From sequence record OR455461.1: DNA of 64,000 nt, one strand, 5' to 3'. Positions 1,168-58,120 of the stretch are shown piece by piece. The stretch's first letter is position 1, and each line of letters begins with the position of its first letter. The translations under genes were made by a program, and so were the position numbers. The notes beneath the pieces were generated by a model. That model saw only the letters and a program-made list of their open reading frames with translations, was not told the DNA's origin and did not search any database.

Positions 1168-3569
1168 TTATTTGAATAAATCCATAATACGTTTATTATT
1201 GTTGTCCATTGGTTTTTGTTGTTGACCAAATATAGAATTACTCATATCATTTCCTTCAATAACACTATTGATACGTTTTATTGAAGTAATATCTTTTCTT
1301 CTAGCTTCTTGTTCTTTTCTGATTCCTTCTGCATTTTCTCCGTTAGATGAGAGTTTAGAACCATATTTAATTTTTACAAATTTATTAATATCCTTTTCAT
1401 AATAATATGCATATAAACAGAATAAATAAGACATCATTAAGTCATCGTGACCTCCCGGTGGATGGTCAATACGTCCTTTAATCATTTGTAAAGATTTTAC
1501 TTCTTGGAAGAGTGCTTTATTATTAATTAAATATGGTTTTTCTTCAACAAGCATAGATAGTATTTCATTTAACATTATATCACGAGATTTTTTAGTTGTA
1601 TCAATACCATATCTACGAGTTTCTTTTTTAACTTTTTCATTTTTACCATATCTAGATACTTCATTAAATAAACCTTTATCTTCTACTTGTTTTTCAGCTA
1701 CACGAGTTTTAAGTGTATAGAATAGATTAGATTCTAAACCATCATAAGTTATCATATGATCAATTACTGTTAAACCTGCATAGTTACGTTCAGGTATTAA
1801 TATAGCGTTAGGTATATAGAAACTAACCAATTCTTTAATTAATTTTCTGAATGTAGGTCCATTAATTACGTTATTTTTAAATGTCATCACTGGTTCCAAA
1901 GTAGCTGGATCCACTACAGTAAATGCTGTATTATCTCGTCCTAAACCACCAGACATATCAATACCAATAAGCCAATTTTTCTCTGTAATATTATCCATAT
2001 ATTTAATCATATTTACATAATAAGTTTTTCCATCAATATTAAATTCAAGAGTATTATATACTTCCTTATTAGCATACATAGATATTTCAGACATTTGCTC
2101 TTCAGAGAATAATGAATCATCAGAACTATAAGCCCATTCCAATAATATTTCACGTTTAACTGCTTCTAAAGAACCAATTTGTCTTTTTTGTTTTGCTAAC
2201 CAATCTTCATCTTTACCTAATTCTTTATATGAATATTCTATATACATGAATTCATTATTTGAATTATCTTCCATGTATTTTTCTAATTTAGAAATTCCTT
2301 CTTCTTCACCATTAATGAAATAATCATATATTTTTTCATTCCATTGAGCTGCTTCATTCATTTGTTGAAAGAAAAATTGCCCATTGTCTTCATCAAGAGT
2401 ACTCAAATTTATTTATTCTTTATAATTATATAAAGTTTAGACTATATCACAATAATTATAATAATTATTATCCATTATTTAGTCGTTGAACATCATTTAG
2501 ATGATGCTGATTAATTTTATAATATTTCAGCAATTAAATAGAAAAGCCCAGTTAATTTTAGGCGTAGTTGTAATTAGAAGTCCATAAGGAGTTCCGTTTC
2601 TTTTAGCAATTGCAGAAGCTGTGGAGTTAGCTGGACGCATGGCCTCAAACATTGTTTGATTATGTTTAATAAATGCCCACTCATCTAGCCAGAATAATGG
2701 CACAGTACCACCTCTCATTTTTCGTTAACTATATGAATTTCATATAGATCAGACTATATCTTAACAATTTCAATGATATTAATATTTAGTCGTTGAACTA
2801 CTATTTTAAGTAGATGCTGATTTATTTAATGATTTTCTCAGCAATTAATTAATTTTATAGCGAGCTAAGGTTATAAATTAATTTTTAAAAATAATTTCCA
2901 TATATGCCATGGAATGATTTAACCCGCTTTATTTGCTTGCTCTTTATTGTTTGGAGGACTGACTGTCTTAATAGTGTTATTATTGGATGCTAATCTAAAT
3001 TCATTTTCAGCATCTTTATCATTCTTATCACCAAAATTTGCCATCACATAATCCGGTAAACATTTTTCTTTAAATAAGTTCTTAAGACGTTTTAAATTCT
3101 CCACTGTATCAGCATAAGCTTTATGTGTAAATAACATTGTATAGTTATTACCTACTAATAACATAATCCATGAATAATAACATACTGCAGAATATGTTTT
3201 ATAGTGCTGACGAGGTAACATTATTGCAGTATCTAAGTTATGCAACATACAGAATGTCATAGCCAAGTTACCTCTATGAAGTTCATACATTACTTTTCCA
3301 CCTGGAACAGGAACTCTAATAACTTCTCTTAAATAAAACCATATATTAAGTTTAGCTTCCCTAATAACACGAGTTTTCATTTCATTATCTAAATCTTCAT
3401 CCCAAGGATCAACACCAATTAATTTCTTATCATATAGAGTTAATGGTAAACCATAATTTTGTATATTATTGTCTTTAAGTTCTTTAGCAACTTTTAAAAA
3501 GCTTATATTATTAGTCTTATAATCGTAATAAACTTTTTTCTTTAATTTTGTTATAGCCATAATCTTCAT
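1168..3569 (-). CDS. terL: Terminase large subunit, 3 exons: join(3569..2922, 2715..2560, 2403..1168), about 679 aa
   Basis: Walker A-like PRQHYKT in exon 1. Junction KAG|RGGTVPLFWLDE restores the GRG/Walker B region. Junction LITTTP|STLD. Exon 3 has nuclease motifs IGIDMSGG..D and GGHDDL. Both junctions are in frame. Confidence 0.92.
2404..2559 (-). mobile_element. Group I intron terL-I2, 156 nt, no ORF
   Basis: P1 exon GCCU/GGGC with U-G at the splice site; P3 UCUAUU/AAUGGA; P4 UGCUG/CAGCA; R element GUUCAACGACUAAA; S element UGAUAUAGUCU; P9 hairpin; terminal G at 2404. Confidence 0.92.
2716..2921 (-). mobile_element. Group I intron terL-I1, 206 nt, no ORF, enlarged L1 loop
   Basis: P1 AGCGGGU/GCUCGCU; P10 ACCUU/GAGGU; P3 AUUAAU/AUUAAU; AAUUGCUG, AAUCAGCA, GUUCAACGACUAAA and AAGAUAUAGUCU core; terminal G at 2716. 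Confidence 0.93.
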
Positions 3570-3583
3570 TCACTTCTTTCTTA

Positions 3584-4753
3584 CTATCTTGTCTTAGTAT
3601 TAATTCTATTAGAATATTTTATTATTCTTTGAATTTCATCTAATTGTTTCTTGAGTTCTTTTTTAACTTCATTAGAATTATTATTGTTACTAATTTCAAA
3701 TTTTAATGTATTAATAACTGCATCAATTGAATCTGTTGGATAATCTTTATAACTTTTAATAAAACCACTCATAGGGTATAAAAGTCCTCTCATAGCTTTA
3801 GCTATTAAATTATTAGATCTTTTTTCAGATTTCATTCTAAATGCTTTATACACTAAATCATAAAATTTAACCATTTCTACAGAATATCCATAAAGAGCAG
3901 GTAATTGGTTAGCAGATCTTTCTGAAAGATTATAATCCATAGTAGTTTTTCTATTGAAACTTGCACTTGTTAGTAACATTCCTGTTCCCATAAATGAACC
4001 CATTGATAAGCTAGCACCTATAAACACAGCAGTTAAACACATTACTAATGTTGACATTGCAAGAATCATAGGAGCTGCTAATACTCTATTTCTTCTATTG
4101 TCAGTTTCTATTTCTTTAGTGTACTTAAACTGTACTGGTTTATTATCTCTATATTTGAGTTCGAATGTAGGAGTTTTGCCACCAGAGAGTACATTAATTT
4201 CTACAGGGAAAAATAAATTATGTCCTATTTCATGTAATAATAAAAAAGTATACATTCTACCATTAAGAGTAGTAAATTCTTTTTGACCTGATGCTTTCTT
4301 TTCGATAAAATATCTCAATGAAGATAATTCAATATTTACTTCAATTTCTCTAGGTTTAGAATAGTAAACACCATTCTTTTCTTCAATAACAATTTTAGTG
4401 ATTCCATCTGTAATATTTCTAATATCTTCAGGTTTAATTAATGTGTGTGCTACTGAACCTACTTTAAATTTATCTTTTCCACGTTTATCAGCTTCAATAA
4501 ATTTTAATTTCATATTAGTGTTAAATAATTTCTTAGTAATATCTGATATTCTTTTTGCAATATCATTATATTCATTCTTATCAATTACATCAAAATCAGA
4601 TTTTTCGAAGTTATATTTACTAATTAATGAATCAAATTCTTCATCTATTTCTCTAAGTAATGAAGTATTTTTACCAAAGTTAAAAGCATCTTCATTTAAA
4701 TTCATTACTTCTTTTATTTTTTTCATTTGCATTTCTTCTTGTAAAGATACCAT
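3584..4753 (-). CDS. Probable virion protein with HExxH zinc-peptidase motif and transmembrane segment
   Basis: LLHEIGH motif, downstream SERSANQ (E-x-x-A-N), hydrophobic stretch VLAAPMILAMSTLVMCLTAVFIG; located between capsid and terminase genes. Confidence 0.5.
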   Translation of the reverse strand: MVSLQEEMQMKKIKEVMNLNEDAFNFGKNTSLLREIDEEFDSLISKYNFEKSDFDVIDKNEYNDIAKRISDITKKLFNTNMKLKFIEADKRGKDKFKVGSVAHTLIKPEDIRNITDGITKIVIEEKNGVYYSKPREIEVNIELSSLRYFIEKKASGQKEFTTLNGRMYTFLLLHEIGHNLFFPVEINVLSGGKTPTFELKYRDNKPVQFKYTKEIETDNRRNRVLAAPMILAMSTLVMCLTAVFIGASLSMGSFMGTGMLLTSASFNRKTTMDYNLSERSANQLPALYGYSVEMVKFYDLVYKAFRMKSEKRSNNLIAKAMRGLLYPMSGFIKSYKDYPTDSIDAVINTLKFEISNNNNSNEVKKELKKQLDEIQRIIKYSNRINTKTR

Positions 4754-4781
4754 ATAATTTTCCTTTCTTTTTATAAAATAA

Positions 4782-4810
4782 ACCCATACACCTCAGAGAG
4801 ATGTATGGGT
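4782..4810 (-). terminator. Terminator after major capsid gene
   Basis: ACCCATACA..TGTATGGGT stem, TTATTTTAT tail on minus strand. Confidence 0.8.
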
Positions 4811-6433: not shown

Positions 6434-6493
6434 AATTTTTTCTGCTCCTTTTCAAATATATTAGCGTGTAGTTTTATATTATTAATTTTATTA

Positions 6494-6505
6494 TATAAAT
6501 TTGTT
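6494..6505 (-). promoter_or_regulatory. Late-type promoter AACA-N6-TA upstream of MCP (second copy at 6550-6561)
   Basis: Minus strand AACAAATTTATA and AACAATAACATA; matches AR9 nvRNAP consensus. Confidence 0.65.
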
Positions 6506-6617
6506 AAGAAATAAAATAACCATTATATTCAAGGGTATTTTTACTTTCATATGTTATTGTTATTAAATTTAAAAAGAATAATAAAACTATTATTAAAAGT
6601 AATTAAAATCATTTATT

Positions 6618-7283
6618 TTACTTTTTACTACGCTTTTTTGTACTTTCTAATTTATTGTATTCTTTTAAATAATTGTCAAATATTTCTTTGTAAGTAGTTT
6701 CAAATTTTTTATATAACTTCTCAGATTTATCTACATCGACAATATTTATAAATTTATTGTTAAATAAATTTATATTATCTTTAAGTTGATCCAGAGATTT
6801 TGTAGTTAATTCAGTTATATCAAACATATCTTTTCTCTCTGAATCTGAAAAATTTTCCATATTTCTGTCATTGATAATGTAGTTAAATTTGTCCATTACA
6901 TCTTTTAATTCAATTAATTTATTAAATATTTGTAATTTTAAAAACTTATCTGAATTACTTTCTTTGGGTTCTTCTGGTGTTTCTTCTGGATTATCTGTAT
7001 CAGTTTCTTCAGATTCAGGTTGTTCAAGATCATTATCTAATCCATCTTCAGTTTCTTCTTGATCTTCCGTAGAATCGTCATTAGAATCATCATTAGAATT
7101 ATCTTCTTCAGTTTCTTCATTATTCTCTTCTTCTGATGAAGTTGATTCAGTATCATCTAATGAATTCTGATCTTGATCATTTTCATCATCTTCAGCTTCA
7201 TTAAGAATATTTTGTTTCATTAATTTATTTATTGATTCAGTGAGTAAATCTCTATTAATATCCATAGTCATTACCACTGTCAT
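6618..7283 (-). CDS. Acidic head-associated (scaffold/core-like) protein
   Basis: D/E/N-rich linker, LTES and LNEA putative protease sites, head gene cluster. Confidence 0.5.
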   Translation of the reverse strand: MTVVMTMDINRDLLTESINKLMKQNILNEAEDDENDQDQNSLDDTESTSSEEENNEETEEDNSNDDSNDDSTEDQEETEDGLDNDLEQPESEETDTDNPEETPEEPKESNSDKFLKLQIFNKLIELKDVMDKFNYIINDRNMENFSDSERKDMFDITELTTKSLDQLKDNINLFNNKFINIVDVDKSEKLYKKFETTYKEIFDNYLKEYNKLESTKKRSKK

Positions 7284-8376: not shown

Positions 8377-9711
8377 ATGTCTAAAGATATTAAAGCTTAC
8401 ATTATTAATGAATCTAATACAACTTCTCAACCAGAAGTAGTTCAAGATAATAATAAATCAGTTAGATTCATTGCTGAGTTACAAGAAGCTGATAGACAAA
8501 ACCGTAATGGTCGTGTTTATCGTAAAGATGTTATCCAAAGTGGTTTAGATAGTCCAGTAGTACAAGAAAAATTAGCAAGAAGAACTTTTTATGGTGAGTT
8601 TTAGGTTAAAATGGCTCACGTTAAATTATATTAATTGCTGAAATCTTATTTAAAGTAATCAGCATCAACTTAATACAAGTTGTTCAACGACTAAATATAT
8701 AACCTAGATGATATAGTCTAATCTTTATTAAAATAATAAAGAATAATAATTTGCAGGTCATCCTTTAAGTGATGAACCTAAACGTCAAATGTATATTGAT
8801 CAACGTAATATTTCTCATATTATCACTAGAACTTGGTGGAATGGTAATAAATTAATGGGAGAAGTAGAAACAGCTCAAACATCAGCTGGTAAGGATATGA
8901 AAGGTTTAATTGGACAAAAATCTGATGTATCTTTCTCAATGCGTGGTTTTAGTAAAATAGAAAGAAAACCTAATGGTGAAGTAGAAGTTACTAAACCTTT
9001 AAGATTAATCTGTTAAATTATAGCAGCTTTATATAGTGATATATAATGAAAAAGAATATTAATTGCTAAGAAGTTTAATTAAGCCAATTAGCATCAACTT
9101 AATACAAGTTGTTCAACGACTAAATATATTCGCTCTTACTAAGAGTATGATATAGTCTCGTCTATATGGAAACCATATAGCTAAGATGTACGTATGACTG
9201 GGTAAAAAATTATTGCTTAGTATAAATAATATTAATTGCTGGAAATCTTTATTAAGATAATCAGCATCGGATTAAATTCCGTTCAACGACTAAATATATT
9301 ACCTAATATAAATTAGGAAGATATAGTCTCGTCTATATGAAAATCATATAGTTAAGATAACGTGTAATTCCATCACATCAAGATTCTTATATCCAAAATA
9401 TAATTTCAGAGAATCATAATAATTACAATACTAGTGATTTACAAATGGTTAATGAATCAATTGATATGTTTTCTAACGGTAAAGTTACAGAATTTTCTCC
9501 TAGAGAAGTTTTAACTTATATTAAAGAAAATTCAGATAATATCAAATATATCGCTGAAGATATGGGATTTGATAAAGCTGATGAATCTAATATCATTTAT
9601 GATAAAGGATCTCAAATAGCTTCAATTAAAGAAAGTAATAAAACTATTAAAGTTTTCTTAGAAGAATCTGTTCTTAATGGACTTGATGATTTCTATAGAA
9701 ACTTTAAATAA
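8377..9711 (+). CDS. Prohead core protease (T4 gp21-like), 4 exons: join(8377..8599, 8754..9013, 9193..9203, 9363..9711), 280 aa
   Basis: NRNGRVY; junction GE-S|GHP restores GExxHP (His); SFSMRG (Ser); LIC|YDWV|VIPSH restores DxVxxPS (Asp). Spliced length 843 nt = 281 codons. Confidence 0.92.
8600..8753 (+). mobile_element. Group I intron pro-I1, 154 nt, no ORF
   Basis: P1 GUGAGU/GCUCAC; P3 UUAUAU/AUAUAA; core AAUUGCUG, AAUCAGCA, GUUCAACGACUAAA, UGAUAUAGUCU; P9 CUUUAUUA/UAAUAAAG; terminal G 8753. Confidence 0.92.
9014..9192 (+). mobile_element. Group I intron pro-I2, 179 nt, no ORF
   Basis: P1 CUGU/GCAG; P10 UUAUA/UAUGA; P3 GAAUAU/AUAUUC; P4 UGCUA/UAGCA (compensatory change relative to the other six); P8 GCUCUU/AAGAGU; terminal G 9192. 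Confidence 0.92.
9204..9362 (+). mobile_element. Group I intron pro-I3, 159 nt, no ORF
   Basis: P1 ACUGGGU/GCUUAGU; P10 AAUUAU/GUAAUU; P3 UAAUAU/AUAUUA; P8 CCUAAU/AUUAGG; terminal G 9362 is the nearby G that restores the frame. Confidence 0.9.
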
Positions 9712-10448: not shown

Positions 10449-10452
10449 TAAA

Positions 10453-10646: not shown

Positions 10647-11231
10647 TTATTTCATTACATTATACGTGTTAAATTGATTTTTTAATCTTTGCTTATCAAA
10701 TTTAATCATTGATTTAGTTTCAAAACGATTTGTATTAAGTTTATCAATATAATCATCTGAATATATTTCATCTATTAATTTTATTTCATGAAAACTAAGT
10801 CTATGTCTTTTAGCTAAAGGAATTAATAATTTATCAGATAAATGTTTAAACATTCTAGTGTCAGGATTATATAAGCTAAAATCATCAGATATAGCTATTA
10901 GAATACTATTTCTATATTTTTGAGGTATGATACCCTTATCTGCTAATTCTTGTAAATAATAACTAGGTTTATAATCTGATAATCCTTCTATAACTACATA
11001 ATCCTTATCTATCAATTCAACAAAATAATGCATAGGTAAAGCTCTAATATTAGCATGTCTAATTAAATAATTCTGAACTTTACCCCAAGAATATTTATAA
11101 GATCCCTTTAATAGATTTCTATCATCAAACTTATTTTCTTTAAGTATTAAATTATTCATATGAGTAATAACTACATGAGTTTGAAATGTATTACTTCTTC
11201 TACGTCTATCTTGTTTTATATCATAATACAA
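10647..11231 (-). CDS. Amidase_2 / T7-lysozyme-like fold protein, probably degenerate
   Basis: Pattern VVITH...MHYFVE...NSILIAISDDF...LAKRHRL...IKLIDE follows the amidase_2 layout; the C-terminal Zn ligands appear absent. Confidence 0.45.
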   Translation of the reverse strand: MYYDIKQDRRRRSNTFQTHVVITHMNNLILKENKFDDRNLLKGSYKYSWGKVQNYLIRHANIRALPMHYFVELIDKDYVVIEGLSDYKPSYYLQELADKGIIPQKYRNSILIAISDDFSLYNPDTRMFKHLSDKLLIPLAKRHRLSFHEIKLIDEIYSDDYIDKLNTNRFETKSMIKFDKQRLKNQFNTYNVMK

Positions 11232-11255
11232 TATTTATTTCACTTCTTTCTAAAA

Positions 11256-11924
11256 TTAGCAATAACTAATTGAATTATATTTTTCTATTAATTTGTTAAA
11301 TGTAATCGGACCAACGTCTCCATCTTGTTTAAGATTATTATCACTCTGAAACTGTAATAAAGAACTTAACATAGTTCTATCAAATACATAGTTTTTACTA
11401 TCGTATTTATTAGCAGAATACCCCAAACCTGTCAGTGCGATACCAACTGTATTAACATCATTACCTTTCATATTATCTTCCCTATACATTAATAATCTGT
11501 AATAGCTTCCTTTAAGATTTCTATTATTTGAAATAGATGGTTCTTCAGGTTTATATTTTCTAGGTAAATGCATATCATAGTAATAAGGAAATTTAGGATT
11601 ACCATTATGGAATTTAAGTATAACTTTATCATAAAGGTTAGGTTTTCTTAAAGGTTTATCTAAATCATTATTCATTAATGGTTGACAAATTAAATAATTA
11701 CCTATGTCTACTTGACTTCTTACATCTAGATCTTCTATATTTATTATATTATTAATATTTAGGTTTCTTTTGATATTTCTTGGGGAATCCTGCAATTCAG
11801 TCATAATAAGTTCATACACAAATAGCTTTACTTCATATGTTTCATCGAAATCTGTATTATCTATAACTACAGCTTCAAAGTCTCGACCAAAATCAAATTC
11901 TTTAAACGATTCTTTATATTGCAT
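11256..11924 (-). CDS. Baseplate spike/hub-like protein (gp5-type OB fold) with C-terminal peptidoglycan-binding domain
   Basis: N-term AVVIDNTD...KPNLYDKVILKFHNGNPKFPYY; C-term GNDV...LTGLGY...FQSDNNLKQDGDVGPITFNKL typical of PG_binding_1. Confidence 0.65.
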   Translation of the reverse strand: MQYKESFKEFDFGRDFEAVVIDNTDFDETYEVKLFVYELIMTELQDSPRNIKRNLNINNIINIEDLDVRSQVDIGNYLICQPLMNNDLDKPLRKPNLYDKVILKFHNGNPKFPYYYDMHLPRKYKPEEPSISNNRNLKGSYYRLLMYREDNMKGNDVNTVGIALTGLGYSANKYDSKNYVFDRTMLSSLLQFQSDNNLKQDGDVGPITFNKLIEKYNSISYC

Positions 11925-11973
11925 GTGTTTTATGAGCTCCTTTCTATTTAAAATGCATTGAGGGGGAAATGTC

Positions 11974-12198
11974 TTGTTACAGTTAGTCTTGCTATGCCTC
12001 TTTATTTATTTTTTGATTTTTAGTTTTCCACTGATTTTAAGTTATTTTAGAATTACTAAACAGTTGAATTCTTTAAAAGAAAAAATAACAAAAATAGAAA
12101 AGGAAACGAATAATCAAAGAAATTTAATTTTCAGATTATCTAAGTTTAATGAAGCTCTTTTAGAAGAAATAAAAGAACAAGAAAAAGATAAGCAATAA
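11974..12198 (+). CDS. Small membrane-anchored coiled-coil protein
   Basis: Hydrophobic N-terminus, GAGGGGG RBS, followed by terminator. Confidence 0.55.
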   Translation: MLQLVLLCLFIYFLIFSFPLILSYFRITKQLNSLKEKITKIEKETNNQRNLIFRLSKFNEALLEEIKEQEKDKQ

Positions 12199-13078: not shown

Positions 13079-15642
13079 TAGTTTTCCTCCCTTTTGATTA
13101 TTGAAATGTTAACTTTATCTTCCATTTCAATATTTTCTTTTCTGATGATCTTATCAGTTATATTTTTATTATCTAATGTATTAATCTTATCTACATATTT
13201 TGTAGTTCCAGTATATTTAATATTTCCTTCATCAATTAAATGGATACTATTTTCAAATTTATCATCTAATTTAAATAATAGACTTGTATAAATTAAATCA
13301 GTTGTATATGATTTGAATAGAGTTATCAATATAGTAATATAATCTCTAATAAAATTAACAATACCTACAAAATTACTATTTGTGAAATACTGTTCTTTAA
13401 GATTAAGATGATTATCAATACTGCTTACTAATTCGAATATTCTCTCTCTAAAAATATTTTCTCTATCAAAAATATCTTCATCATATATTTCACTTTCAAC
13501 GACTGTATAATAATACAAATCAGGTTCTTTAAATTTAAGATAATCTGAATAAGTTTTAAAACCTTTAAAAATATCGTTACTAGAATTAGTAATAAATAGC
13601 TGTTTATGAAGATTATTAAATTTTTTTCGTAAATGAGGATCATTTGAATTATATATTAACTCTTCTAATTCTTTACGAAATTCTTCATTATACTTATAAA
13701 TTTCAATAATATCATAAATGTTAATAAGATCTTTATCTGAATCACTGTAAGATAATATATCACTGATGTAAGAATTTAAAGCTGGATATCTAGTTATTTG
13801 CTTTTTAGGAGTGTATAATTTATTTTTAATTGAATAATCTATTGATCTTCTTATAGATGTTACTAGCTTATCTATATTTTCTTCATTTTTATTTTGTTTA
13901 TAATCTTGATAAGATTTACTTAAAAAATTAACATTCATAACTTTAACAAATTCATCAATATCTTTATCAATAGAATTATCTTCTATCATAATCAAATATA
14001 CATCTTCTTTATTTATACGACCATCACGAATCATTACATTTAAAAATTTTTTGTAAATTTCCATAAAGTTCTTATAGTAAGATATATTTTTGAAATCAAA
14101 TTCTCTTTCATGTTTAGATATTTGTGTCCATAAATATCTCATACCATCTATAATTAAATCATTTTCAATATAGTATTCTAATTGTGTAGAACCATTTATA
14201 CCAGTCATTATTTCTGAAATAAATTTAAATTGTCTCTGAGCTAAATCAGACATTTCATATTCTCTAACAATATCTTCATAGCTTAGTGTATTTCTATTTT
14301 TAAATTTCTTAATATTAAGGAAATTTAGTTCTCTAGCAAAATCAGTATAATCCGATTTATCAAATTGTCTAGAATAAATATAGTTACGAATATCATCTAC
14401 AGTTTCTTTAATATCTGAATTAAAATTATAACCATAAATATTCATATTCTTATCATTCTTGATTCTATCATTCCATTTAATATAATTTATGACAAGTGTA
14501 TTAAGTGTAACAATTCCGTCAAAAACATTAAACTTTCTAGAACTGATTCTTGAGTTAGTCATATTAAAACTATCATCTTCAATAATGTCTTCATCTTCCT
14601 TCATTAAGTTAATTAAACTGTATAAGAATGATAAAGATTTACTATTATTAATTATGTCTATAACTGCGTCTGTAGAGATATATTTAGTTTGTATTACATT
14701 AAATGCTTTATCCATAACCTCTTCTTTAGTGTTTCTCCAATATGGATCAAGATCAATGATTTCATTATAACCGTATTGATTATCATTATATACATCAAGG
14801 TTATCATTTACATTTGTTTTATAAAATTTTAGATCATCTTCATGTTTAGCCAAGTAATATTTATTAATATCTATTGAGTTAATGGAGAATATATCTTCTA
14901 TAATTGGAAATATCTCATTTGTACCTTTATTACGGATTAAATCATTTATGCGTTTGTATGTTCTTCTTTGATATTCTAAAGGGAAATCGTCAAAGTAATC
15001 AAGTCCATTAGAAATAAAAGCATTCTTTAAATCTCTTTTAGTATATCTATCAACATCAAATACTCTATACATTGTTTTATTTATATATCTATGTATAGTT
15101 GCGTTAATTAAATACATATAATACATTTCTCTATAATAGACTTGATTATTAAAAGCTCTAGTGTGTGTTACCTTTTTAAAATAATTAAGAGCTTCAGAAT
15201 AACTTTCTAATAATAAAGATTCTTCTTTTTTATCTAATGTATGGTTACTTATTTTAATGATATCAAAATCATTTGATGTACGTGATATATATGGATCAAT
15301 ATCATACATATTTTGTAATTTCCCATAGTATGGATTACGTTCTTTATAATTTCTTAAAATACTATCTTTATCAAATACTGAATAGTAATCATCTAACGTA
15401 TTTTCTTTAGCTCTAATATATAAATCTGACTCCATCATAGAATCATTAGATTCTAATCTATCTGCAAATTCTTGATCCTTTATTATTAAACCTTGACAGA
15501 ATTTAACTATATCGTCTAAATTTTCTATATCTTCTTCAGTAAAGGCTTTATAAAAATAAAGAGGATTGTATTTTCTTAAATCATCTTTACTGAAGTTCTT
15601 ATAATCAGTGAATTCTATGGCCATTGAAATCCTCTCTTTCAT
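13078..15642 (-). CDS. Baseplate wedge-like protein (854 aa)
   Basis: LIRNKGT motif typical of wedge subunits; AACA-N6-TA at 15656-15667. Confidence 0.5.
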   Translation of the reverse strand: MKERISMAIEFTDYKNFSKDDLRKYNPLYFYKAFTEEDIENLDDIVKFCQGLIIKDQEFADRLESNDSMMESDLYIRAKENTLDDYYSVFDKDSILRNYKERNPYYGKLQNMYDIDPYISRTSNDFDIIKISNHTLDKKEESLLLESYSEALNYFKKVTHTRAFNNQVYYREMYYMYLINATIHRYINKTMYRVFDVDRYTKRDLKNAFISNGLDYFDDFPLEYQRRTYKRINDLIRNKGTNEIFPIIEDIFSINSIDINKYYLAKHEDDLKFYKTNVNDNLDVYNDNQYGYNEIIDLDPYWRNTKEEVMDKAFNVIQTKYISTDAVIDIINNSKSLSFLYSLINLMKEDEDIIEDDSFNMTNSRISSRKFNVFDGIVTLNTLVINYIKWNDRIKNDKNMNIYGYNFNSDIKETVDDIRNYIYSRQFDKSDYTDFARELNFLNIKKFKNRNTLSYEDIVREYEMSDLAQRQFKFISEIMTGINGSTQLEYYIENDLIIDGMRYLWTQISKHEREFDFKNISYYKNFMEIYKKFLNVMIRDGRINKEDVYLIMIEDNSIDKDIDEFVKVMNVNFLSKSYQDYKQNKNEENIDKLVTSIRRSIDYSIKNKLYTPKKQITRYPALNSYISDILSYSDSDKDLINIYDIIEIYKYNEEFRKELEELIYNSNDPHLRKKFNNLHKQLFITNSSNDIFKGFKTYSDYLKFKEPDLYYYTVVESEIYDEDIFDRENIFRERIFELVSSIDNHLNLKEQYFTNSNFVGIVNFIRDYITILITLFKSYTTDLIYTSLLFKLDDKFENSIHLIDEGNIKYTGTTKYVDKINTLDNKNITDKIIRKENIEMEDKVNISIIKREEN

Positions 15643-16852: not shown

Positions 16853-17644
16853 ATGGATATGACAGAAGAAGCTTTAATTAAGGCTATATATTTATTTAAG
16901 GAAGATAAGAACGATATTGAAATTGATATAGCTAAGAATATTATGGATGAACTTAAAGAAGAGGATAATCGAAAAGAATTTGATGATTTAGAAAGAAGAA
17001 TAATCAATATTGAAGATACAAAAACATTTAGAGATTTTTATAGCTTTAAAATGATTAGAAGAAAATCAGATTTTATTAAAGGAATTGCTTTTGATAATTT
17101 TAATGATTTCTTTTTAGATAGTTTAGAACTTAATAAAGATTATAACTTTGCTAAAAATATATTTGAGTTTTTAACAATCTTAAGAAAACAAGATAAATCA
17201 GAAATGTTTCCAGATGGAAAAGAAAATATTGAAGATAGATTAATTGCATTAATGTCTAGTTATATTACAGAAGAATATAATAAGAAATATAATTTAAATT
17301 ATTATAATATATATAATATTATGGTAGCTACTTATATCGATATGTATATTTTCTTCTATAAAGAAGAATTGATGAACGGTAACAATATTTTAGAATTAAA
17401 AGAAGAATCTAATGAAATTAAATTATTCTCTGAAAGTTATATTAATGATTTCTTAAATGAATCTATAAAAGCTACAGAAATATTTGATGAAATTAATAGT
17501 AATATATTAAAGAATTTTCCACCACAAGTTAAACCTGACATTAATAGTTTACTACATGAAATTAAGAAACAGGCAAATAAAATTGCTAGTGAAAATAATG
17601 TAGATATGTCACTAGTAAATACTCTAATTGAATATAAACAATAA
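16853..17644 (+). CDS. Hypothetical protein (263 aa)
   Basis: AGGAG RBS, long ORF. Confidence 0.75.
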   Translation: MDMTEEALIKAIYLFKEDKNDIEIDIAKNIMDELKEEDNRKEFDDLERRIINIEDTKTFRDFYSFKMIRRKSDFIKGIAFDNFNDFFLDSLELNKDYNFAKNIFEFLTILRKQDKSEMFPDGKENIEDRLIALMSSYITEEYNKKYNLNYYNIYNIMVATYIDMYIFFYKEELMNGNNILELKEESNEIKLFSESYINDFLNESIKATEIFDEINSNILKNFPPQVKPDINSLLHEIKKQANKIASENNVDMSLVNTLIEYKQ

Positions 17645-28169: not shown

Positions 28170-28219
28170 AAATATTTAAACATTCTCTTATAATATAAAA
28201 TGAAGGAGAATGTTTAAAT

Positions 28220-28582
28220 ATGATAAAATCAAATGGTGTTGTTCCTGTTTTTGATACAAAATATGATACGACTGGAAATTTAATTTCAGGAAGATTGTCT
28301 CTTGTTATTGATACCGATCAAATAAAGTCGAATGGTGAATTTAATGAATATAAAGCAGGTCAAGTATTTTCTTCTGGTCCTTCTATAGTATTTATCATAG
28401 ATATGAATACTTATAATCAAGTTGAAAAATTAAAAATTGCTTTTATAGATGGATTACCTAATCTGCTTGTAAAAGATGGAGAAGAATTTGAAGAAATTGA
28501 AGATCAAGAAACTCCTGAAGAAAAAGAAATTCGTGAACTTCAAGAGAAATTAGCTGCATTAATGGCTAGTAGAAGTAAATAG
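28220..28582 (+). CDS. Small protein downstream of tail fibre (possible assembly chaperone)
   Basis: Position; weak similarity to 35294 protein (YDTTGNLI vs VDKEGNII); promoter AACATTCTCTTA 28179-28190. Confidence 0.45.
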   Translation: MIKSNGVVPVFDTKYDTTGNLISGRLSLVIDTDQIKSNGEFNEYKAGQVFSSGPSIVFIIDMNTYNQVEKLKIAFIDGLPNLLVKDGEEFEEIEDQETPEEKEIRELQEKLAALMASRSK

Positions 28583-35793: not shown

Positions 35794-36420
35794 TTAACCG
35801 AAAATACGATCTAATGATTCTTCTAATGATTCGTTTGTGCTTTCTTCATCTTCTGAATCTTCTTCTTCGTCTTCATCTTCTTTAGTAATTTTATCTACAT
35901 CTTCTTCAGGTTTTTCTTTAGAATCTAGAGATTTTTCTGAATTCATTTTGTTAGCTTTAGTTGTCTGCTTATCCACATCCATCTCAGGCTTTTCATTTTC
36001 TTCGAATAGACGTTCTAATTCTTCTTCTAATGAATCTTCATCATCTTCAGAATCTTCATCTTCGTCTTCATCTTCATCTTCTTCTTCAGAATCATCTTCG
36101 TCAGACTCTTCAACTGAATCTTCATCTTCTTCAGAATCATCTTCGTCAGACTCTTCAACTGAATCGTCTTCATCTTCATCTTCTTCAGAATCTTCTTCAT
36201 CTGCCGATTCAATGAGGTTTTCAAATTGTTCTTCTACTGAAGTTTCCTCTGAATCTTCATCATCTTTTTTATCAGATTTTGTTTCAGAATCTTCTTTAGA
36301 TTCACTTTCATCTTCATCTGCTGATTCAATGATACTTTCGAATTGTTCTTCAAGAGCTTCTTCCTGAGCTTGCTCGAAAAGTTGTTCTAACTCTTCTTGA
36401 ATTGCATTTTGTTTTTCCAT
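35794..36420 (-). CDS. Extremely acidic protein, scaffold/internal-head-like
   Basis: D/E/S-rich with many LEE, IIES and LIES motifs. Confidence 0.55.
   Translation of the reverse strand: MEKQNAIQEELEQLFEQAQEEALEEQFESIIESADEDESESKEDSETKSDKKDDEDSEETSVEEQFENLIESADEEDSEEDEDEDDSVEESDEDDSEEDEDSVEESDEDDSEEEDEDEDEDEDSEDDEDSLEEELERLFEENEKPEMDVDKQTTKANKMNSEKSLDSKEKPEEDVDKITKEDEDEEEDSEDEESTNESLEESLDRIFG
36081..36165. repeat. 45-bp-period tandem duplication (DSVEESDEDDSEE x2)
   Basis: Identical 40-mers at 36081-36120 and 36126-36165. Confidence 0.9.
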
Positions 36421-39463: not shown

Positions 39464-40090
39464 TTATTTAAATCCCCTTTTTATTAATTCATTTTTATAT
39501 TCTTTTTCATTAATTTTATTTATTCTAGTATTTATAATATTCATAAAATTATATAACCTCATATTATTAACTTTATACATTCTTGCATTATTTCCATTAT
39601 CATACCCAATATTATTATTTATAGGTTCGATAATTTCTTTAGAGTTACAATGTGAAATTAATTCAAATACAATATTTCTATTTTCACTTATATCGATAAT
39701 TAATTCTAGGTTTGAAAATTCTAAATCTAAATTATTAATATCCTCTTTAATTAGATTAAATATATTTTTAGAATTTTCTATATCATGGGTCAACCTATAA
39801 TAATCTCCATATACGTCTTCTCTAAATAAACCTATATTACCTTTTGATATTATATGGTATTTAAATTCTATAATATTTCTTAAACTATTCAATTCAATAG
39901 TGATTGTGTTATATTTAATTATTTTTCTCATTCTATCAGTATAAAATTCATTGAAAAATTGTTCAAATAAAATAATATTTAATTCTTGAGAATCAATACT
40001 ATCTTTATTCTGTTTATATGGTAATTTTAGTGTATCAATATTTTTAAAATTTCTTAACAAACCTCTAAAATCCAACATGAAATAATTCAT
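39464..40090 (-). CDS. Hypothetical protein with C-terminal tag (INEKEYKNELIKRGFK)
   Basis: ORF plus tag. Confidence 0.75.
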   Translation of the reverse strand: MNYFMLDFRGLLRNFKNIDTLKLPYKQNKDSIDSQELNIILFEQFFNEFYTDRMRKIIKYNTITIELNSLRNIIEFKYHIISKGNIGLFREDVYGDYYRLTHDIENSKNIFNLIKEDINNLDLEFSNLELIIDISENRNIVFELISHCNSKEIIEPINNNIGYDNGNNARMYKVNNMRLYNFMNIINTRINKINEKEYKNELIKRGFK

Positions 40091-40133
40091 CTATCATTTT
40101 CATCTCCTTCAAATAAAAAAATTAATTATAATA

Positions 40134-40163
40134 GAGATGATACTTTAATTAAAGTATCATCTC
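40134..40163 (-). terminator. Terminator hairpin
   Basis: GAGATGATACTTT/AAAGTATCATCTC stem. Confidence 0.7.
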
Positions 40164-40171
40164 ATATTTTA

Positions 40172-40486
40172 TTAAATTACATTTTTATAGATAGTTTCAG
40201 GTACAAATTCTTCATCATAATCATGAATAGTTAATAATACACCTTCATGAGAATATTCTAAAGTATACATGTCATTTTCATCATTAACATTAACTACTGA
40301 ATAAGAGAAAATACTTGAATCTTGGTCTAATCCTAATTCTTCAATTAAACCTGATTCAGTTCCATAACCTTCATCTACACCTATTTCATTACTTTCTAGT
40401 ACTTCATACTCTCCGTCTACTTCGCCTCTAAGTTGTAAATCTCTTAATACTTCTTCGTTTAATTTTGTCATAATAAATTCCTCCAT
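40172..40486 (-). CDS. Acidic hypothetical protein
   Basis: GGAGG RBS; follows promoter cassette; likely start at the second Met. Confidence 0.7.
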   Translation of the reverse strand: MEEFIMTKLNEEVLRDLQLRGEVDGEYEVLESNEIGVDEGYGTESGLIEELGLDQDSSIFSYSVVNVNDENDMYTLEYSHEGVLLTIHDYDEEFVPETIYKNVI

Positions 40487-53890: not shown

Positions 53891-54952
53891 TTATTTAATA
53901 CTACTGAATAATATTGGATCTGATATTTTAATTCTGTCTTTAGGTACTCCAAAATCTTTTTCTTCTTCATGTAAATTGTAATAAATATTAGCATCATTAA
54001 GTTTAACTGCAATTGAATTACCTAACATTCTATAACTTTTATAATCTGATAATTTAACATCCTTATCAGAATAAATATTTATATTCATATTAAGTAAACC
54101 TAATTTACTTAAATAATCAAATACAAATTTATATCCTTTTCCATTATTAGCTATAAATAAATCATTATCATTTATCTCCCTATTATGAATATGATTAAAT
54201 ACAGATATAATGTCAAAGAAACCTTCTGCTATGTGAACATTATAAACATTTTGGTCTAATACCAAATTATTTGTGATTGAATAAAATCTATTACTTTCTT
54301 CTGCTAAATTTTTAAATATCTTTTGTTTAAAGTGTTTTTTACCAGTAACTTCATTAAACATCTTTCTACAATTTATAGTGTTTCTATCATTTAACATATA
54401 ACTAAAATAATTTTGATTTAATGTATTTATTTGAAGCTTATTATCCATATCAAAATTATTCTTTCTATAGAAATCATTTATATTTAATATTAGTTTATAT
54501 AAACTAATATCTGCTTTACTAATAGTAATTCCTAATCTTTCATTGATATAATTAATTTTTCCTATTTCTAATTCATTGTATTGATCTGGATAGTAATCTA
54601 ATATTTTAGTATTTCTATCTATAAAACTTTTACCGTATTTTCTATTTAAGTTAGATAAGTAATTATTATATTCACTATTAATATAACTACCAATATCTGC
54701 TTGATTAGAGTTTAACATTTCTAGTACTTTACTATTCATAACTCCTGAAGCATTACATCTTTGACAGAAATATTTGAATGGTGTATTATTTTGAATATAC
54801 ATATGTGTTGATTTATTAGATTTTTTAGAATCACCACAAAATGGACATCTAACCATTGTTTCATCTTGAGAAGAAGTTAATCTACATGGATTAACATTCT
54901 GTTTTAGATGATGATATAAAGTTAAATCGTATTTACTCATGTAGATTAACAC
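53891..54952 (-). CDS. DNA primase (T4 gp61-like)
   Basis: Zn finger RCPFCGDS...FCQRCNASG; TOPRIM IAEGFFD; YSDKD...KDFG. Confidence 0.88.
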   Translation of the reverse strand: MLIYMSKYDLTLYHHLKQNVNPCRLTSSQDETMVRCPFCGDSKKSNKSTHMYIQNNTPFKYFCQRCNASGVMNSKVLEMLNSNQADIGSYINSEYNNYLSNLNRKYGKSFIDRNTKILDYYPDQYNELEIGKINYINERLGITISKADISLYKLILNINDFYRKNNFDMDNKLQINTLNQNYFSYMLNDRNTINCRKMFNEVTGKKHFKQKIFKNLAEESNRFYSITNNLVLDQNVYNVHIAEGFFDIISVFNHIHNREINDNDLFIANNGKGYKFVFDYLSKLGLLNMNINIYSDKDVKLSDYKSYRMLGNSIAVKLNDANIYYNLHEEEKDFGVPKDRIKISDPILFSSIK

Positions 54953-54966
54953 TTCTTTCTTTTATA

Positions 54967-55611
54967 TTATAATAAACTAATAATTTTTCGAACGATTTTA
55001 TCAAAGATAGATTCTTGTTTTCCTGCTTTTTTAATATCTACATTATCACGATATTCTTTACCTGTTTCAGGATCTTTTTGAACATTTTGCATTTTATCTT
55101 TAATATTTTTAGCTTTTTCTTCTGTTTTATTTTTAAGACCTTCTGCTGCTTCTTTTGTTTTCTCTACTGTAGGTGATTCAACTACAGTTTCCACAGCTAA
55201 TTCTACTTTACTTGGTTTAACATCATCTCCACGTAAAATTTTCTTATATTCGTTAAATGTAGGATAACCTTCTTTAGCAAATCTATAATCTTCAGTTAAA
55301 TGTCCAAAATATTCAGCTCTACGAATATGAGTAATAGTGTGAGTTTTTCTTTCAGTTCCATATTTTTCTTTGAATTCTTTTAAGATGTAAGTATTACCAT
55401 GTCCTTTATCGATTAAACCAGCAATGAAGTGAACTTGCTCTTTAGTTAATTTTGGTGTACCTTTAGTAGTTGTTTGTTTTTTAGTCATTTTTGAATCATC
55501 CTTTTTATTATTTTTTGACAAATCTATAATTTTTTCGTTATTTGAGTTTTCTAATTTAATTTCTTTTTCTAACTTTTTTCTTTGTCGTTTATTCATGTCG
55601 CATTTCTCCAT
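54967..55611 (-). CDS. Basic protein with possible HTH
   Basis: LTKEQVHFIAGLI...TITHIRR; K/T-rich. Confidence 0.5.
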   Translation of the reverse strand: MEKCDMNKRQRKKLEKEIKLENSNNEKIIDLSKNNKKDDSKMTKKQTTTKGTPKLTKEQVHFIAGLIDKGHGNTYILKEFKEKYGTERKTHTITHIRRAEYFGHLTEDYRFAKEGYPTFNEYKKILRGDDVKPSKVELAVETVVESPTVEKTKEAAEGLKNKTEEKAKNIKDKMQNVQKDPETGKEYRDNVDIKKAGKQESIFDKIVRKIISLL

Positions 55612-56187
55612 TCAATTTAATAGTCTATCAATAAAAATATTATTGTTAAATGTATAAGCACCAGTATTATCTAATTTTTTATAATTAAAATTACTTCTAA
55701 TATATTTTCTAATTCTACTTTTAATGACATTTTCTAAGAAATTAGTTGTATTATATATTTCTGAAATTAATTCGTTTCTCCACTTATTAATTCCATCGGT
55801 TATATCATAAGTGCCAGTTATTCCTAATGATTCATTTTCATATTTATGTCCTAAATTTCCTCTATTAACGCTATATAAAGTATTTAAAACCATATTAAGT
55901 CTTTCAGCAAAAGTGTTACATAAAAATCTAGATATTTCATAATGTGTTGTAGTTAAAGTTACACTTACAACTTTATTAATATCATTGTTAACAATCTTTT
56001 TAATATGTTTTTTAGAATTATCTTTAAAACTGTTAGATTCTTTTATAATATCATTAATAATATCTTGATTAATATAATCCTGATCAATCTTAAGTAATTC
56101 TTTATAAATTTCTTCATAAAATATATCTAACGATTTTTCAGCCATATCGATTAAATTCTTTTCATTATTCTTTTTATATTTTATCAA
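55612..56187 (-). CDS. Hypothetical protein
   Basis: Long ORF. Confidence 0.7.
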   Translation of the reverse strand: MIKYKKNNEKNLIDMAEKSLDIFYEEIYKELLKIDQDYINQDIINDIIKESNSFKDNSKKHIKKIVNNDINKVVSVTLTTTHYEISRFLCNTFAERLNMVLNTLYSVNRGNLGHKYENESLGITGTYDITDGINKWRNELISEIYNTTNFLENVIKSRIRKYIRSNFNYKKLDNTGAYTFNNNIFIDRLLN

Positions 56188-56254
56188 TTCTATAAACCCT
56201 CCATATTTATAAAGTATAATAAGAATGGATAATCATAAAGATTATCCATTAAAA

Positions 56255-56455
56255 TTACTTATTCACTTTGATTGCATAATCATAAAGTATCAAAGCAGTA
56301 TTAAAAGCTATATTATCTAATTTATTAATTCCCCTTTTAATTCTACCAATTTTAGCTCTACTTATTCCAGTACATTTTTCAATTTCATAATTACTAATCT
56401 CTTTATTATTTAATAGTTTTTCTATCTCATATTTAACTTCTTCAGCTTTATTCAC
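56255..56455 (-). CDS. Small XRE-like HTH regulator
   Basis: ISNYEIEKCTGISRAKIGRIKRG. Confidence 0.7.
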   Translation of the reverse strand: MNKAEEVKYEIEKLLNNKEISNYEIEKCTGISRAKIGRIKRGINKLDNIAFNTALILYDYAIKVNK

Positions 56456-58120
56456 TAGCTTTAATACCTACATTTTTTGATTTAGGGTTATTTAGTAAAT
56501 AAACAGCTATTTGTGAGTCTTTATTAAGCGAGTAAGTTCTATTAAATAATCCATCATTATATGAAATTAATTGATTTACTGGATCTTGGACTTTTAACTG
56601 TTCGTATTGTTCTTCTGAAAATAGTGCTATGATGTTTAAAGTGTCACCATCATACGTTTATCTTAATCTATATAAATATTATCATATAGACGAGACTATA
56701 TCATTACCATTTAAGGTAGAATATATTTAGTCGTTGAACAAATTATATTAATTTGATGCTGATTAATTTAATAATCTTCTCAGCAATTAATATTCTTTTC
56801 TATAAATCTCTCAATTTAAAGCGACTATTATTTAATCGGCCATTTGTATTAACTTCATAGAGATTTTTCTATAAAGATTAGACTATATCAAACTCATATT
56901 AGTGAGTGAATTTATTTAGTCGTTGAACAATCATCTTGATTGATGCTGATTAATTTAATAATCTTCTCAGCAATTAAAATTCTTTTGACATTATATTACT
57001 ATAATGAAAGGCTACCTTTATAACCCATACCAGCAAGTATATTATTACTAATACCTACTACTGATGATTCTATATCTTGAATTATATCTTTAATTTTCAA
57101 TATTTGAACAGAGCTTTCACTAATTGAGGGATTTCTATTTAAAATAACTCTCATTCCATTTTCAGTTTTATCAACTAGTTCTCTCATATATTTATATACT
57201 TTAGGATTAAATGTATCTAATGCTCTGTCTAATATTTCTTCACCTTTAGCTAAAGGAATATTTTCTGTTACATACATTAAATTTGCTAAGATAGGTTTAT
57301 ATACTTCTAAGAAGATAGTGTAATTTAATCTGATTTCATTTAATTTAAGGTCAGGTGCTGGAACAATTACTGAACGTGCAGAGAAACCAACACGACTACC
57401 CATTAGTAATTTACGAATAGTTCCACCTTTACCTTTAATATTCTCATTAATTACACGATCACTAATATTAATACTATCATTCTGAATTTTACTTAATAGA
57501 TTTAATTTTTGTAACTCCACTGAATCATCTGTATAATGTCTATCAAGTTCTTTAATACTATTACTATGTGCAATTAATAAATTATAATCTTTATTAATTT
57601 CAGAATGTCTAAAAGTTTTAGTAGCTTTGTTAACTGTAGCAGGTCTTAATTTAGGACTAAATACAGTTACATAATTTTGGAATAGTAAATCAGATAAATA
57701 CCATTGTACTACTCTATTGTAATCTTTAGTTTTACGTTTATCACGTTTAACTTCTTCTTTAAGAATTTTTAAGAAATTCTTTCTAAATTCAATTAAACCA
57801 ATATAAGAGTTATGATCATCTTCAGGTTCAATTACATTACCATTCTCATCAATAGGTTTTTCAGAACTAATAATTTCTTGGAATCTTTTATTACCAATTA
57901 ATTTTTTAACACGTTCATATCCTAATGGATTTAATATATAATTATTACCTAAATCTACAATAGCTTCATTAGTAATATTATCTGCTTCTGAATCAGGACC
58001 GAAGATTTTTTCACTGAAAATACCATCTTCAGTGAAATCTCCTTTTTTATCTATTGATTCATGATTAGTTACAACTGGAACATTTTCTAAATCCTTTTTC
58101 TTGAGTAAAAATCTAACCAT
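56448..58120 (-). CDS. rpoC: Non-virion RNA polymerase beta' subunit, N-terminal part, 3 exons: join(58120..57023, 56840..56835, 56654..56448), 436 aa
   Basis: DGIFSEKIFG, MGSRVGFSARSVI, LNRNPS. Splicing gives LAGMG|AD|YDGDTLNII, the catalytic DxDGD motif. Close to AR9 nvRNAP beta'N from recall. Confidence 0.93.
56655..56834 (-). mobile_element. Group I intron rpoC-I2, 180 nt, no ORF
   Basis: P1 CGAU/GUCG; P10 AUAAUA/UAUGAU; P3 AGAAUAU/AUAUUCU; conserved core; terminal G 56655. Confidence 0.92.
56841..57022 (-). mobile_element. Group I intron rpoC-I1, 182 nt, no ORF
   Basis: P1 GGGU/GCCU; P2 CAUUAUA-GUAA-UAUAAUG; P3 GAAUUU/AAAUUC; conserved core; terminal G 56841. Confidence 0.92.

Follow-up and report, generated by a model that had tools for sequence, protein, structure and literature searches.

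Probable compact group I introns in the terminase, prohead protease and RNA polymerase genes of Staphylococcus jumbo phage AH12

Known introns and the inserts of AH12

The elements considered here are seven small inserts without an open reading frame (ORF) in three genes of Staphylococcus phage AH12, all of them in a 64,000-nt window that is identical in sequence to bases 62001-126000 of its genome record (OR455461.1). Among described systems phage Twort, from the same host genus, resembles AH12 in having introns (orf142 I1-I3 and those of nrdE) that occur several per gene and are in part ORF-less, and the two phages are also alike in their R and S elements and in their U.G and terminal-G chemistry. 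The ORF-less Twort introns, known from the work of Landthaler and Shub and from a ribozyme crystal structure, are reportedly of subgroup IA2, with helices P7.1/P7.2, and have a length of at least about 240-250 nt. This subgroup is typical of T4, SPO1 and Twort introns, and its extra helices lie between P7 and the 3' strand of P3. The AH12 elements, unlike those of Twort, are 154-206 nt long, have no space for P7.1/P7.2 and belong to a family with 31 copies per genome. In the related AR9/PBS1 lineage the same gene, that for the N-terminal subunit of beta' of the non-virion RNA polymerase (nvRNAP), is interrupted near the catalytic motif, and Lavysh et al. are said to have demonstrated splicing of the AR9 introns experimentally in 2016. 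The AR9 intron in the beta' gene carries an HNH endonuclease gene, unlike the AH12 introns, and was rejected as a member of the AH12 family after a weak match to the family model described below (22.9 bits, E 0.009). The Azoarcus pre-tRNA-Ile intron (subgroup IC3) is a minimal self-splicing intron of 205 nt that lacks peripheral elements and is G+C rich and very stable. Among natural self-splicing group I introns it is usually given as the smallest, a size record that our literature search did not confirm. At 154-182 nt, six of the seven AH12 introns fall below this length; A+U makes up about 75-80% of the AH12 introns, which lie in protein-coding genes rather than in a tRNA. Introns crowded in conserved motifs and separated by exons of a few bases are found in fungal and placozoan mitochondrial cox1 (PMC5436844, PMC12308204) but, unlike in AH12, the genomes are those of organelles and the introns are mostly large and ORF-bearing. 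Finally, ORF-less introns of T7-like phages and cyanophages are spread by an endonuclease encoded outside the intron, termed collaborative homing (PMC3984707), whereas no endonuclease gene was found beside any of the seven window introns of AH12 (Pfam, the PHROG families listed, tblastn).

AH12 is a 264.7-kb jumbo phage whose relatives include Machias, PB50, MarsHill, Madawaska, LY01, DC4, S6, PALS_2 and SA1, and the G+C content of the window is about 19-31%. Three essential genes of the window, those for the terminase large subunit, the prohead protease and nvRNAP beta', are interrupted by two, three and two inserts, respectively. We call these introns T1 and T2, introns P1 to P3 and introns R1 and R2; helices of similar name are always referred to without the word intron. 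Their lengths, with borders taken from the reading frame and homology, are 206, 156, 154, 179, 159, 182 and 180 nt, which is where and how long a sequence-only reading of the window had placed them. On the evidence of their sequences, the seven inserts are very probably cis-splicing group I intron ribozymes of a single compact ORF-less family.

The family is first apparent from shared sequence elements. The 15-mer GTTCAACGACTAAAT is found in exactly seven copies in the window, and its count at three or fewer mismatches was equalled in none of 100 shuffles. The exact sequence GATATAGTCT also has seven copies, each 16-32 nt downstream of a copy of GTTCAACGACTAAAT, and UAAUUGCU followed by AAU(C/U)AGCAUC precedes GTTCAACGACTAAAT in the same order in all seven inserts. 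The P, Q, R and S elements of the group I core (UAAUUGCU, AAU(C/U)AGCAUC, GUUCAACGACUAAAU and GAUAUAGUCU) can be read in order in every insert. We built a covariance model from the part between P3 and the terminal G (130-144 nt) of the seven inserts; its seven matches in the window, at 72.8-147.5 bits, are these inserts, and the next-best match scores 20.9 bits (E 0.14). R-like sites with three mismatches at 13494, 23151 and 42943 were ruled out as family members by the model search, according to which about 20 further weak matches from a lenient BLAST of the introns against the window are A+T-rich noise. The longest ATG-started frame in any of the seven inserts is 26 aa, so the inserts are ORF-less as claimed, and none of the seven holds an endonuclease ORF. 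Scans for tRNAs and tandem repeats returned nothing relevant to the introns.

Probable ribozyme core and interrupted genes

The inserts were folded by hand and by alignment into P3, P4, P5, P6, P7, P8, P9 and a two-pair P9.0 by the terminal G, with P3 and P7 forming the usual group I pseudoknot. A P2 hairpin is present in introns P2, R1 and R2, and in the other four the guide sequence runs directly into P3; the surplus length of intron T1 is a 56-nt L1 loop ahead of the guide sequence. P7.1/P7.2, the hallmark of subgroup IA2, are absent, the 3' strand of P3 starting directly after the R element (ACUAAAU). All seven inserts follow an exon U and end in G, and in all seven this U forms a U.G pair in a P1 helix of 4-7 bp, the guide G lying at intron position 10-15 (57 in intron T1). 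P10 comprises 0-5 bp. The six-pair P3 varies in sequence and keeps its pairing in the same register in all seven, as had been proposed, once misplaced gaps in introns T2 and R2 of the MAFFT alignment are allowed for.

P3 also covaries in an alignment of the 31 copies from the whole AH12 genome. In this alignment, which was fitted to the model and so favours structure, 93.6% of cells are paired, compared to 28-45% with the partners slid. Double-sided changes are found in 28 of 41 pairs and in 224 cells, versus 67 in shuffles, and none of 500 shuffles attains the observed value. The covarying helices are P3, P6, P8, P9 and P9.0, the last with G-C in seven, A-U in 20 and U-A in four copies of the pair. 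P4 and P7 are invariant or nearly so, and P4 has one compensatory change, from G-C to A-U in intron P2. An independent MAFFT alignment of the seven inserts has the same P3, P6 and P9 changes. Minimum free energy (MFE) folding recovers P1, P4, P5, P8 (where present) and P9, while P6 is found in one MFE and one centroid structure. When the Rfam model Intron_gpI (RF00028) was searched against stretches of 0.4-0.8 kb, all seven inserts aligned over model positions 1-253, at 16.5-45.5 bits and E values of 2.9e-10 to 0.098. The core elements, the U.G pair, the terminal G, the covarying helices and these full-length alignments all support the assignment to group I.

The architecture is reduced to P1, an optional P2, P3-P9 and P9.0. 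In the transcript, the internal guide sequence close to the intron's 5' end would pair with the last 4-7 exon bases, placing the terminal exon U opposite G. Free guanosine bound in P7 would attack the bond at the 5' splice site, after which the terminal G, positioned by P9.0, would occupy the guanosine site and the exons would be joined. Two, three and two such events would yield a 679-aa terminase, a 280-aa prohead protease and a 436-aa nvRNAP beta' N-terminal subunit, and the spliced proteins would hold junction-spanning peptides such as ...GMGADYDGDTLN....

Terminase exon 1 (2922..3569, minus strand) has 216 codons from the ATG at 3569, versus a start at 3560 in the GenBank record, and ends ...NKAG; it matches the PHROG terminase large subunit (E 1.4e-55) and its end aligns to terL of DC4 and SA1. 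Intron T1 (2716..2921, minus strand, 206 nt; model 119.5 bits, Rfam 16.5) is inserted at KAG/RG, has no P2 and has a 7-bp P1 (AGCGGGU/GCUCGCU). It sits 11 codons before the Walker B LDE, and by comparison with T4 gp17 at AV/RG, 11 residues before the Walker B DE. Exon 2 (2560..2715, minus strand; 52 codons, RGGTVPLFWLDE...ITTTP) is in frame with the Walker B and TTT motifs of T4 gp17 as judged via the DC4 homologue. Intron T2 (2404..2559, minus strand, 156 nt; model 72.8 bits, Rfam 27.0) lacks P2, has the P1 GCCU/GGGC and a 3-bp P10, and is inserted at TTTP/ST, immediately after the TTT ATPase coupling motif in the comparison with gp17. Exon 3 (1168..2403, minus strand; 411 codons and the stop) was identified by its PHROG terminase match and the junction alignment. 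Removal of both introns rejoins KAG/RG..LDE and TTTP/ST in a gap-free, in-frame alignment to DC4 and SA1 terL, and the exons sum to 2040 nt compared to 2034 in the intact gene.

The protease gene lies on the plus strand. Exon 1 (8377..8599), a match to the PHROG head maturation protease, ends ...FYGE plus the first base of a Ser codon. Intron P1 (8600..8753, 154 nt; model 106.9 bits, Rfam 32.6), the smallest intron in the window, has neither P2 nor P8, has the P1 helix GUGAGU/GCUCAC and is inserted at GES/GHP, two codons ahead of the His aligned with His85 of T4 gp21 (5jbl; the mutated catalytic His). Exon 2 (8754..9013), supported by PHROG and the junction alignment, includes the Ser aligned with gp21 Ser140. 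Intron P2 (9014..9192, 179 nt; model 147.5 bits, Rfam 45.5, E 2.9e-10), with a P2 hairpin, is inserted at LIC/YD. It is followed by an 11-nt micro-exon, TATGACTGGGT (9193..9203), which encodes YDW and two bases of a Val codon, is found gap-free inside the DC4 and SA1 proteases and holds the 7-bp P1 target of the next intron. Intron P3 (9204..9362, 159 nt; model 133.8 bits, Rfam 41.6), without P2 and with the P1 helix ACUGGGU/GCUUAGU, is inserted at YDWV/VIPS, so that in the comparison with T4 gp21 (5jbl) introns P2 and P3 flank YDWV. Exon 4 (9363..9711) runs to the stop. The exons sum to 843 nt, the length of the DC4 gene, and on removal of the introns GES/GHP and C/YDWV/VIPS are rejoined without gaps relative to the DC4 and SA1 proteases, micro-exon included.

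Exon 1 of the gene for the nvRNAP beta' N-terminal subunit (57023..58120, minus strand) has 366 codons, ends ...LAGMG and matches Pfam RNA_pol_Rpb1_2 and a PHROG RNA polymerase. Intron R1 (56841..57022, minus strand, 182 nt; model 124.9 bits, Rfam 24.8), with P2 and the P1 GGGU/GCCU, is inserted at MG/AD. The 6-nt micro-exon GCCGAT (56835..56840, minus strand) encodes Ala-Asp, is gap-free in DC4 and MarsHill and holds the 4-bp P1 target of intron R2 (56655..56834, minus strand, 180 nt; model 124.2 bits, Rfam 36.9), which is inserted at AD/YDGD and has P2, the P1 CGAU/GUCG and a 3-bp P10. Exon 3 (56448..56654, minus strand; 68 codons and the stop) is absent from the annotation of the AH12 record. 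The ADYDGD split by introns R1 and R2, which flank Ala-Asp, is the metal-binding motif of beta' (DxDGD). The exons sum to 1311 nt, as in DC4 and MarsHill, and removal rejoins MG/AD/YDGD gap-free relative to the beta' of these two phages, with GCCGAT in place. The 679-, 280- and 436-aa products predicted from the sequence are thus encoded after joining.

Uninterrupted versions of these genes, of 677, 280 and 436 codons, exist in DC4, SA1 and, for beta', MarsHill, and the intact DC4 homologues receive the same PHROG and Pfam identities as the AH12 exons. The joined AH12 flanks align to the intact genes without gaps at all seven junctions, and the family model has no match in the intron-free gene loci of DC4, SA1 and MarsHill. 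At position -1 AH12 has T at all seven sites; the corresponding bases of DC4, which lacks the introns, are A, G, T, C, T, T and C. Phage micro-exons of 6-14 nt are not otherwise known to us. The P1 of intron P3 is contained wholly in the 11-nt micro-exon and that of intron R2 wholly in the 6-nt micro-exon, and therefore each tandem intron can define its own 5' splice site. As cited in passages of PMC10136302 and PMC3984707, tandem introns like those of Twort raise the question of exon skipping.

These junctions also bear on the possibility that the inserts are not introns at all and are instead a dispersed non-coding repeat, either a regulatory RNA or a miniature mobile element, that breaks genes whose pieces are separate polypeptides or dead. 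It is true that RNA polymerase subunits are encoded in pieces by separate genes in this phage family (Korn et al.), and GenBank lists the pieces as separate coding sequences (CDS). Against this, micro-exons of 6 and 11 nt are untranslatable alone, the junctions offer no start codons for the downstream pieces, ADYDGD, a catalytic motif, would be in three parts, the junctions are base-exact and in frame, and the covariation follows a group I core. We therefore consider a non-intron repeat highly improbable.

The group I reading itself has weaker points, which have to be set against it. Rfam Intron_gpI scans of the whole window gave no group I match, either at the gathering cut-off or at E<=10, and the scores of all seven inserts on shorter stretches are below the RF00028 gathering score of 50. 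In predicted stability the inserts surpass shuffles by a modest margin only (z -1.4 and -2.6), the intron RNAs are about 75-80% A+U, P1 has just 4 bp in four introns and P10 is missing in three, and intron P1 has a 7-nt linker in place of the core helix P8. Splicing at the seven sites, and its autocatalysis, is inferred: the genes are essential in a viable phage and group I chemistry is established. Because of the missing P8 of intron P1, autonomous catalysis is uncertain. It is possible, if rather doubtful, that these are group I introns too reduced to self-splice, whose removal depends on an RNA chaperone or maturase-like protein of the phage or host. Weak folding energy, extreme A+U richness and short P1 helices would fit such a dependence, as would the absence of P8 from intron P1 and the three AH12 copies that cluster with it and of P9 from the LY01 and MarsHill members described below. 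On the other hand all core junctions and the guanosine-binding P7 are invariant, the P8-less form is found in four copies and so is viable in some way, and a Pfam scan of 64 ORFs together with the PHROG families listed identified no candidate maturase in the window. The four P8-less copies are located at window positions 8600-8753 (intron P1) and, in the AH12 loci L009 and L011, at 11375-11506 and at 28208-28330 and 40082-40207, respectively. They are one another's closest relatives, with 70-74% identity, which makes the P8-less form a small sub-lineage and not a single accident. A PB50 intron at the GES|GHP site has a 5' half identical to that of AH12 intron P1 but keeps a P8 of 7 bp.

Family members, annotation and relatives

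The sequence-only reading had counted a family of seven. Seven is correct for the window, but in the whole AH12 genome the family model finds 31 copies, 30 of them at 55 bits or more. Among the genes that hold the 24 copies outside the window are nrdE, gyrB and RNA polymerase beta-like genes, and most of these copies form tandem clusters of two to four. By the covariance model they lie at 11099-12056 and 17038-17583 of locus L009, 9495-9635 of L010, 8632-9399, 11367-12245, 27742-28330 and 40082-40958 of L011, and 6476-6782, 11040-11997 and 37416-37551 of L013. Spliced alignment to the whole DC4 genome placed 22 AH12 copies, of 144-212 nt; this automatic alignment mis-split several tandem clusters, and nine of the 31 copies are without exact borders. 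For the copies at 11546-11726 and 11382-11530 (L009) the DC4 alignment yields no placement with T before and G at the end; these may have C at -1, or their borders may be shifted by one or two bases in the alignment. DC4 itself has no family copies, either by BLAST or in a model search of two DC4 loci.

Sister phages share some of these introns and lack others. All three protease introns and both beta' introns of AH12 recur in Machias, whereas the R1 and R2 sites are empty in PB50 and the T2 site is empty in MarsHill. The terL gene of MarsHill (L003 3279-3805) has three family introns, with a 14-nt micro-exon, CGTGGTTCTACTGT, after the first. This first intron is a P9-less member of 127 nt at the T1 site, and the third lies at MRP/AV; reading the introns in this way yields the junction KAGRGSTVPMVWLDE, which matches DC4. 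The family model thus solves the reconstruction of MarsHill TerL that Korn et al. could not complete. At the T1 site the MarsHill exon has GCA where AH12 has GCG, and the guide is GCUUGCU rather than GCUCGCU, a difference that reads as a compensatory change in P1. LY01 has a P9-less member of 161 nt at NR/NP of beta'. In PB50 (L002 12345-12529) one protease intron is inserted at CYD/WVV, in the middle of what is the 11-nt micro-exon of AH12, and its guide, GUCGCUU, equals the guides of AH12 intron R2 and of the AH12 gyrB intron. Across the phages, an 11-nt stretch of the protease gene and a 15-nt stretch of the beta' gene each have three different insertion points, which makes these insertion hot spots.

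Similar compact cores exist beyond these phages. At least 119 stretches in IMG/VR contain the exact R...S pattern. Many of these lie on 230-400 kb contigs, and the family model has 107 matches in 80 of the stretches. Such cores (L019-L098) are common on uncultivated contigs of 230-400 kb and are also present in some giant-virus bins. A 14-kb IMG/VR locus (L025 295-11777) has an RNA polymerase beta-like gene, about ten model matches and five HNH endonuclease genes. The IMG/VR loci examined hold no homologues of four DC4 proteins, those of terL, the protease, beta' and the capsid. Rfam at its gathering cut-off reported no introns in five metagenomic loci that hold 34 family-like cores.

It had been predicted that automated annotation would report these genes as fragments, and this is borne out in the AH12 GenBank record, which has no introns and lists the pieces as hypothetical proteins except for beta' exon 1 (RNA polymerase subunit), beta' exon 3 being missing. 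In the Machias record the protease CDS is joined from three pieces despite the three introns, and beta' is one truncated CDS. Pipelines miss the introns because their Rfam Intron_gpI scores fall under the gathering cut-off. Two PHROG families cover little beyond single exons: phrog_32359 ('terminase large subunit', 210 positions), at window positions 2922-3569, and phrog_31489 ('head maturation protease', 91 positions), at 8377-8598. Fragments split by introns have seemingly become database families here. The authors of the DC4 genome paper used Rfam to seek introns and found none, and a 2025 study of introns in Bastillevirinae noted that group I introns of phages may escape the Rfam and GISSD models.

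For AH12, PB50 or LY01 our literature search found no paper. For MarsHill, Madawaska and Machias, Korn et al. have described the genes for the prohead protease, terminase, RNA polymerase subunits, DNA polymerase and gyrase B as intron-disrupted. They inferred the introns from protein alignments and left TerL unreconstructed, and give no ribozyme class, family, structure or micro-exons. That the sister phages have introns in these genes had already been published, but not their ribozyme class, family or micro-exons.

Two further observations in the window concern other genes. A 127-aa ORF at 60599-60982 (minus strand) has 83% DNA identity to a phiSA_BS1/BS2 gene annotated as a recombination directionality factor, and its sequence suggests gene exchange between unrelated groups of Staphylococcus phages. 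Tandem repeats of 18, 27 and 45 nt at 36023-36202 encode an acidic stretch rich in Asp, Glu and Ser in the ORF 35794-36420 (minus strand).

Spread of the family and its meaning

Among the mapped copies the insertion sites show a strong bias. Six of the 22 come after GGGT, a tetramer that accounts for 0.13% of those ending in T (binomial 4e-13), and four come after CGAT (0.30%; binomial 6e-7). Three of the nine GCCGAT hexamers of the AH12 genome carry an intron, in three different genes. The mapped biased sites include AH12 genome positions 118835, 166997 and 237009. Furthermore, non-orthologous introns with a common target tetramer have a core identity of 68.1%, compared to 61.7%, a value reached in 23 of 5000 permutations; examples are intron T2 with the MarsHill terL intron C, and intron R2 with the PB50 protease intron. 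The link between relatedness and target fits guide-directed reverse splicing and also fits selection for a stable P1.

One way in which the family may have spread is by such reverse splicing, directed by the guide into RNAs with 4-6 matching nt and followed by copying into DNA, without an endonuclease of its own. This is a recognised hypothesis that needs 4-6 complementary bases and for which direct proof is still lacking (PMC3984707). The bias towards GGGT, CGAT and GCCGAT and the way in which core relatedness tracks the target tetramer both speak for it. Yet the bias could also reflect selection after insertion for a G+C-rich P1, or the Gly and Asp codons of conserved motifs, and the sample is small and its members are mutually related. 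The R2 site in DC4 is GCTGAC, not GCCGAT, so that the flanks changed with the intron, as in co-conversion at the DNA level, and relatives that carry an endonuclease exist. We therefore put reverse splicing forward only tentatively. A link to the reverse transcriptase of these phages was dropped, as the enzyme is also present in SA1, which is intron-free at the loci examined.

The endonuclease-carrying relatives qualify the proposal that the family has no homing endonuclease of its own: the seven window members are ORF-less, but PB50 (L005 4535-6260) has a member with a 504-aa endonuclease-like ORF that has the Pfam DUF4379 treble-clef zinc finger. This ORF is in L1, between the 5' splice site and the guide, and the intron is inserted at YDG/D of beta', 9 nt from the R2 site. 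Machias and PB50 also have an endonuclease ORF among their terminase introns. The sole AH12 homologue of these PB50 and Machias ORFs is at genome positions 135343-136686 (L011 9343-10686), where its neighbours are a cluster of three more introns and a degenerate copy of the family that lacks P4-P6 and scores 32.9 bits.

The introns could thus have spread by DNA homing in trans, by endonucleases encoded elsewhere, either free-standing or in sister introns of co-infecting phages, with later loss of the gene. Collaborative homing is an established precedent (PMC3984707). The PB50 member so close to the R2 site and the terminase-intron ORFs, together with their AH12 homologue beside an intron cluster, agree with this; the 56-nt L1 loop of intron T1 could be the remnant of an ORF, and base changes between AH12 and PB50 cluster at the insertion sites. 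Pointing the other way, recognition of more than 25 different sites by a single endonuclease or just a few is improbable, and a tetramer bias is not expected from long protein recognition sites. Nor was an endonuclease detected in the window: Pfam identified none of the endonuclease families in the 64 ORFs, none is among the 25 listed of 40 matched PHROG families, and tblastn with the endonucleases of the relatives gave no match, though endonucleases of unrecognised families could have escaped these searches. Homing in trans is in our view a plausible route, though somewhat short of the expected one, and given the endonuclease-bearing relatives it is equally possible as reverse splicing.

Whatever their mode of spread, the probable group I introns of AH12 vary in size from 154-206 nt in the window to 144 nt elsewhere in the genome, and the MarsHill terL member has only 127 nt; sub-lineages without P2, P8 or P9 exist. 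We can only speculate, and think it rather unlikely, that they are the smallest natural self-splicing group I ribozymes, that they reached about 30 copies per genome via guide-directed reverse splicing into GGGU and CGAU, with no endonuclease of their own, and that such swarms, overlooked by Rfam at its gathering cut-off, are common in huge phages. The elements are ordinary in kind and unusually small, numerous and tightly packed, and are only partly anticipated by the literature. The AR9 non-virion polymerase makes late transcripts (PMC5312081), and because of this and of the interrupted genes, these splicing events would be required for late transcription, DNA packaging and head maturation alike. 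The terminase, the head protease and the catalytic RNA polymerase subunit of Staphylococcus jumbo phages that are candidates for therapy are recorded in GenBank as fragments or truncated, and the family-specific model recovers their exact junctions. The family also offers dozens of natural, covarying and very small group I cores, some without P8 or P9, and its strong target-site bias makes the reverse-splicing hypothesis testable in a tractable phage-host pair.

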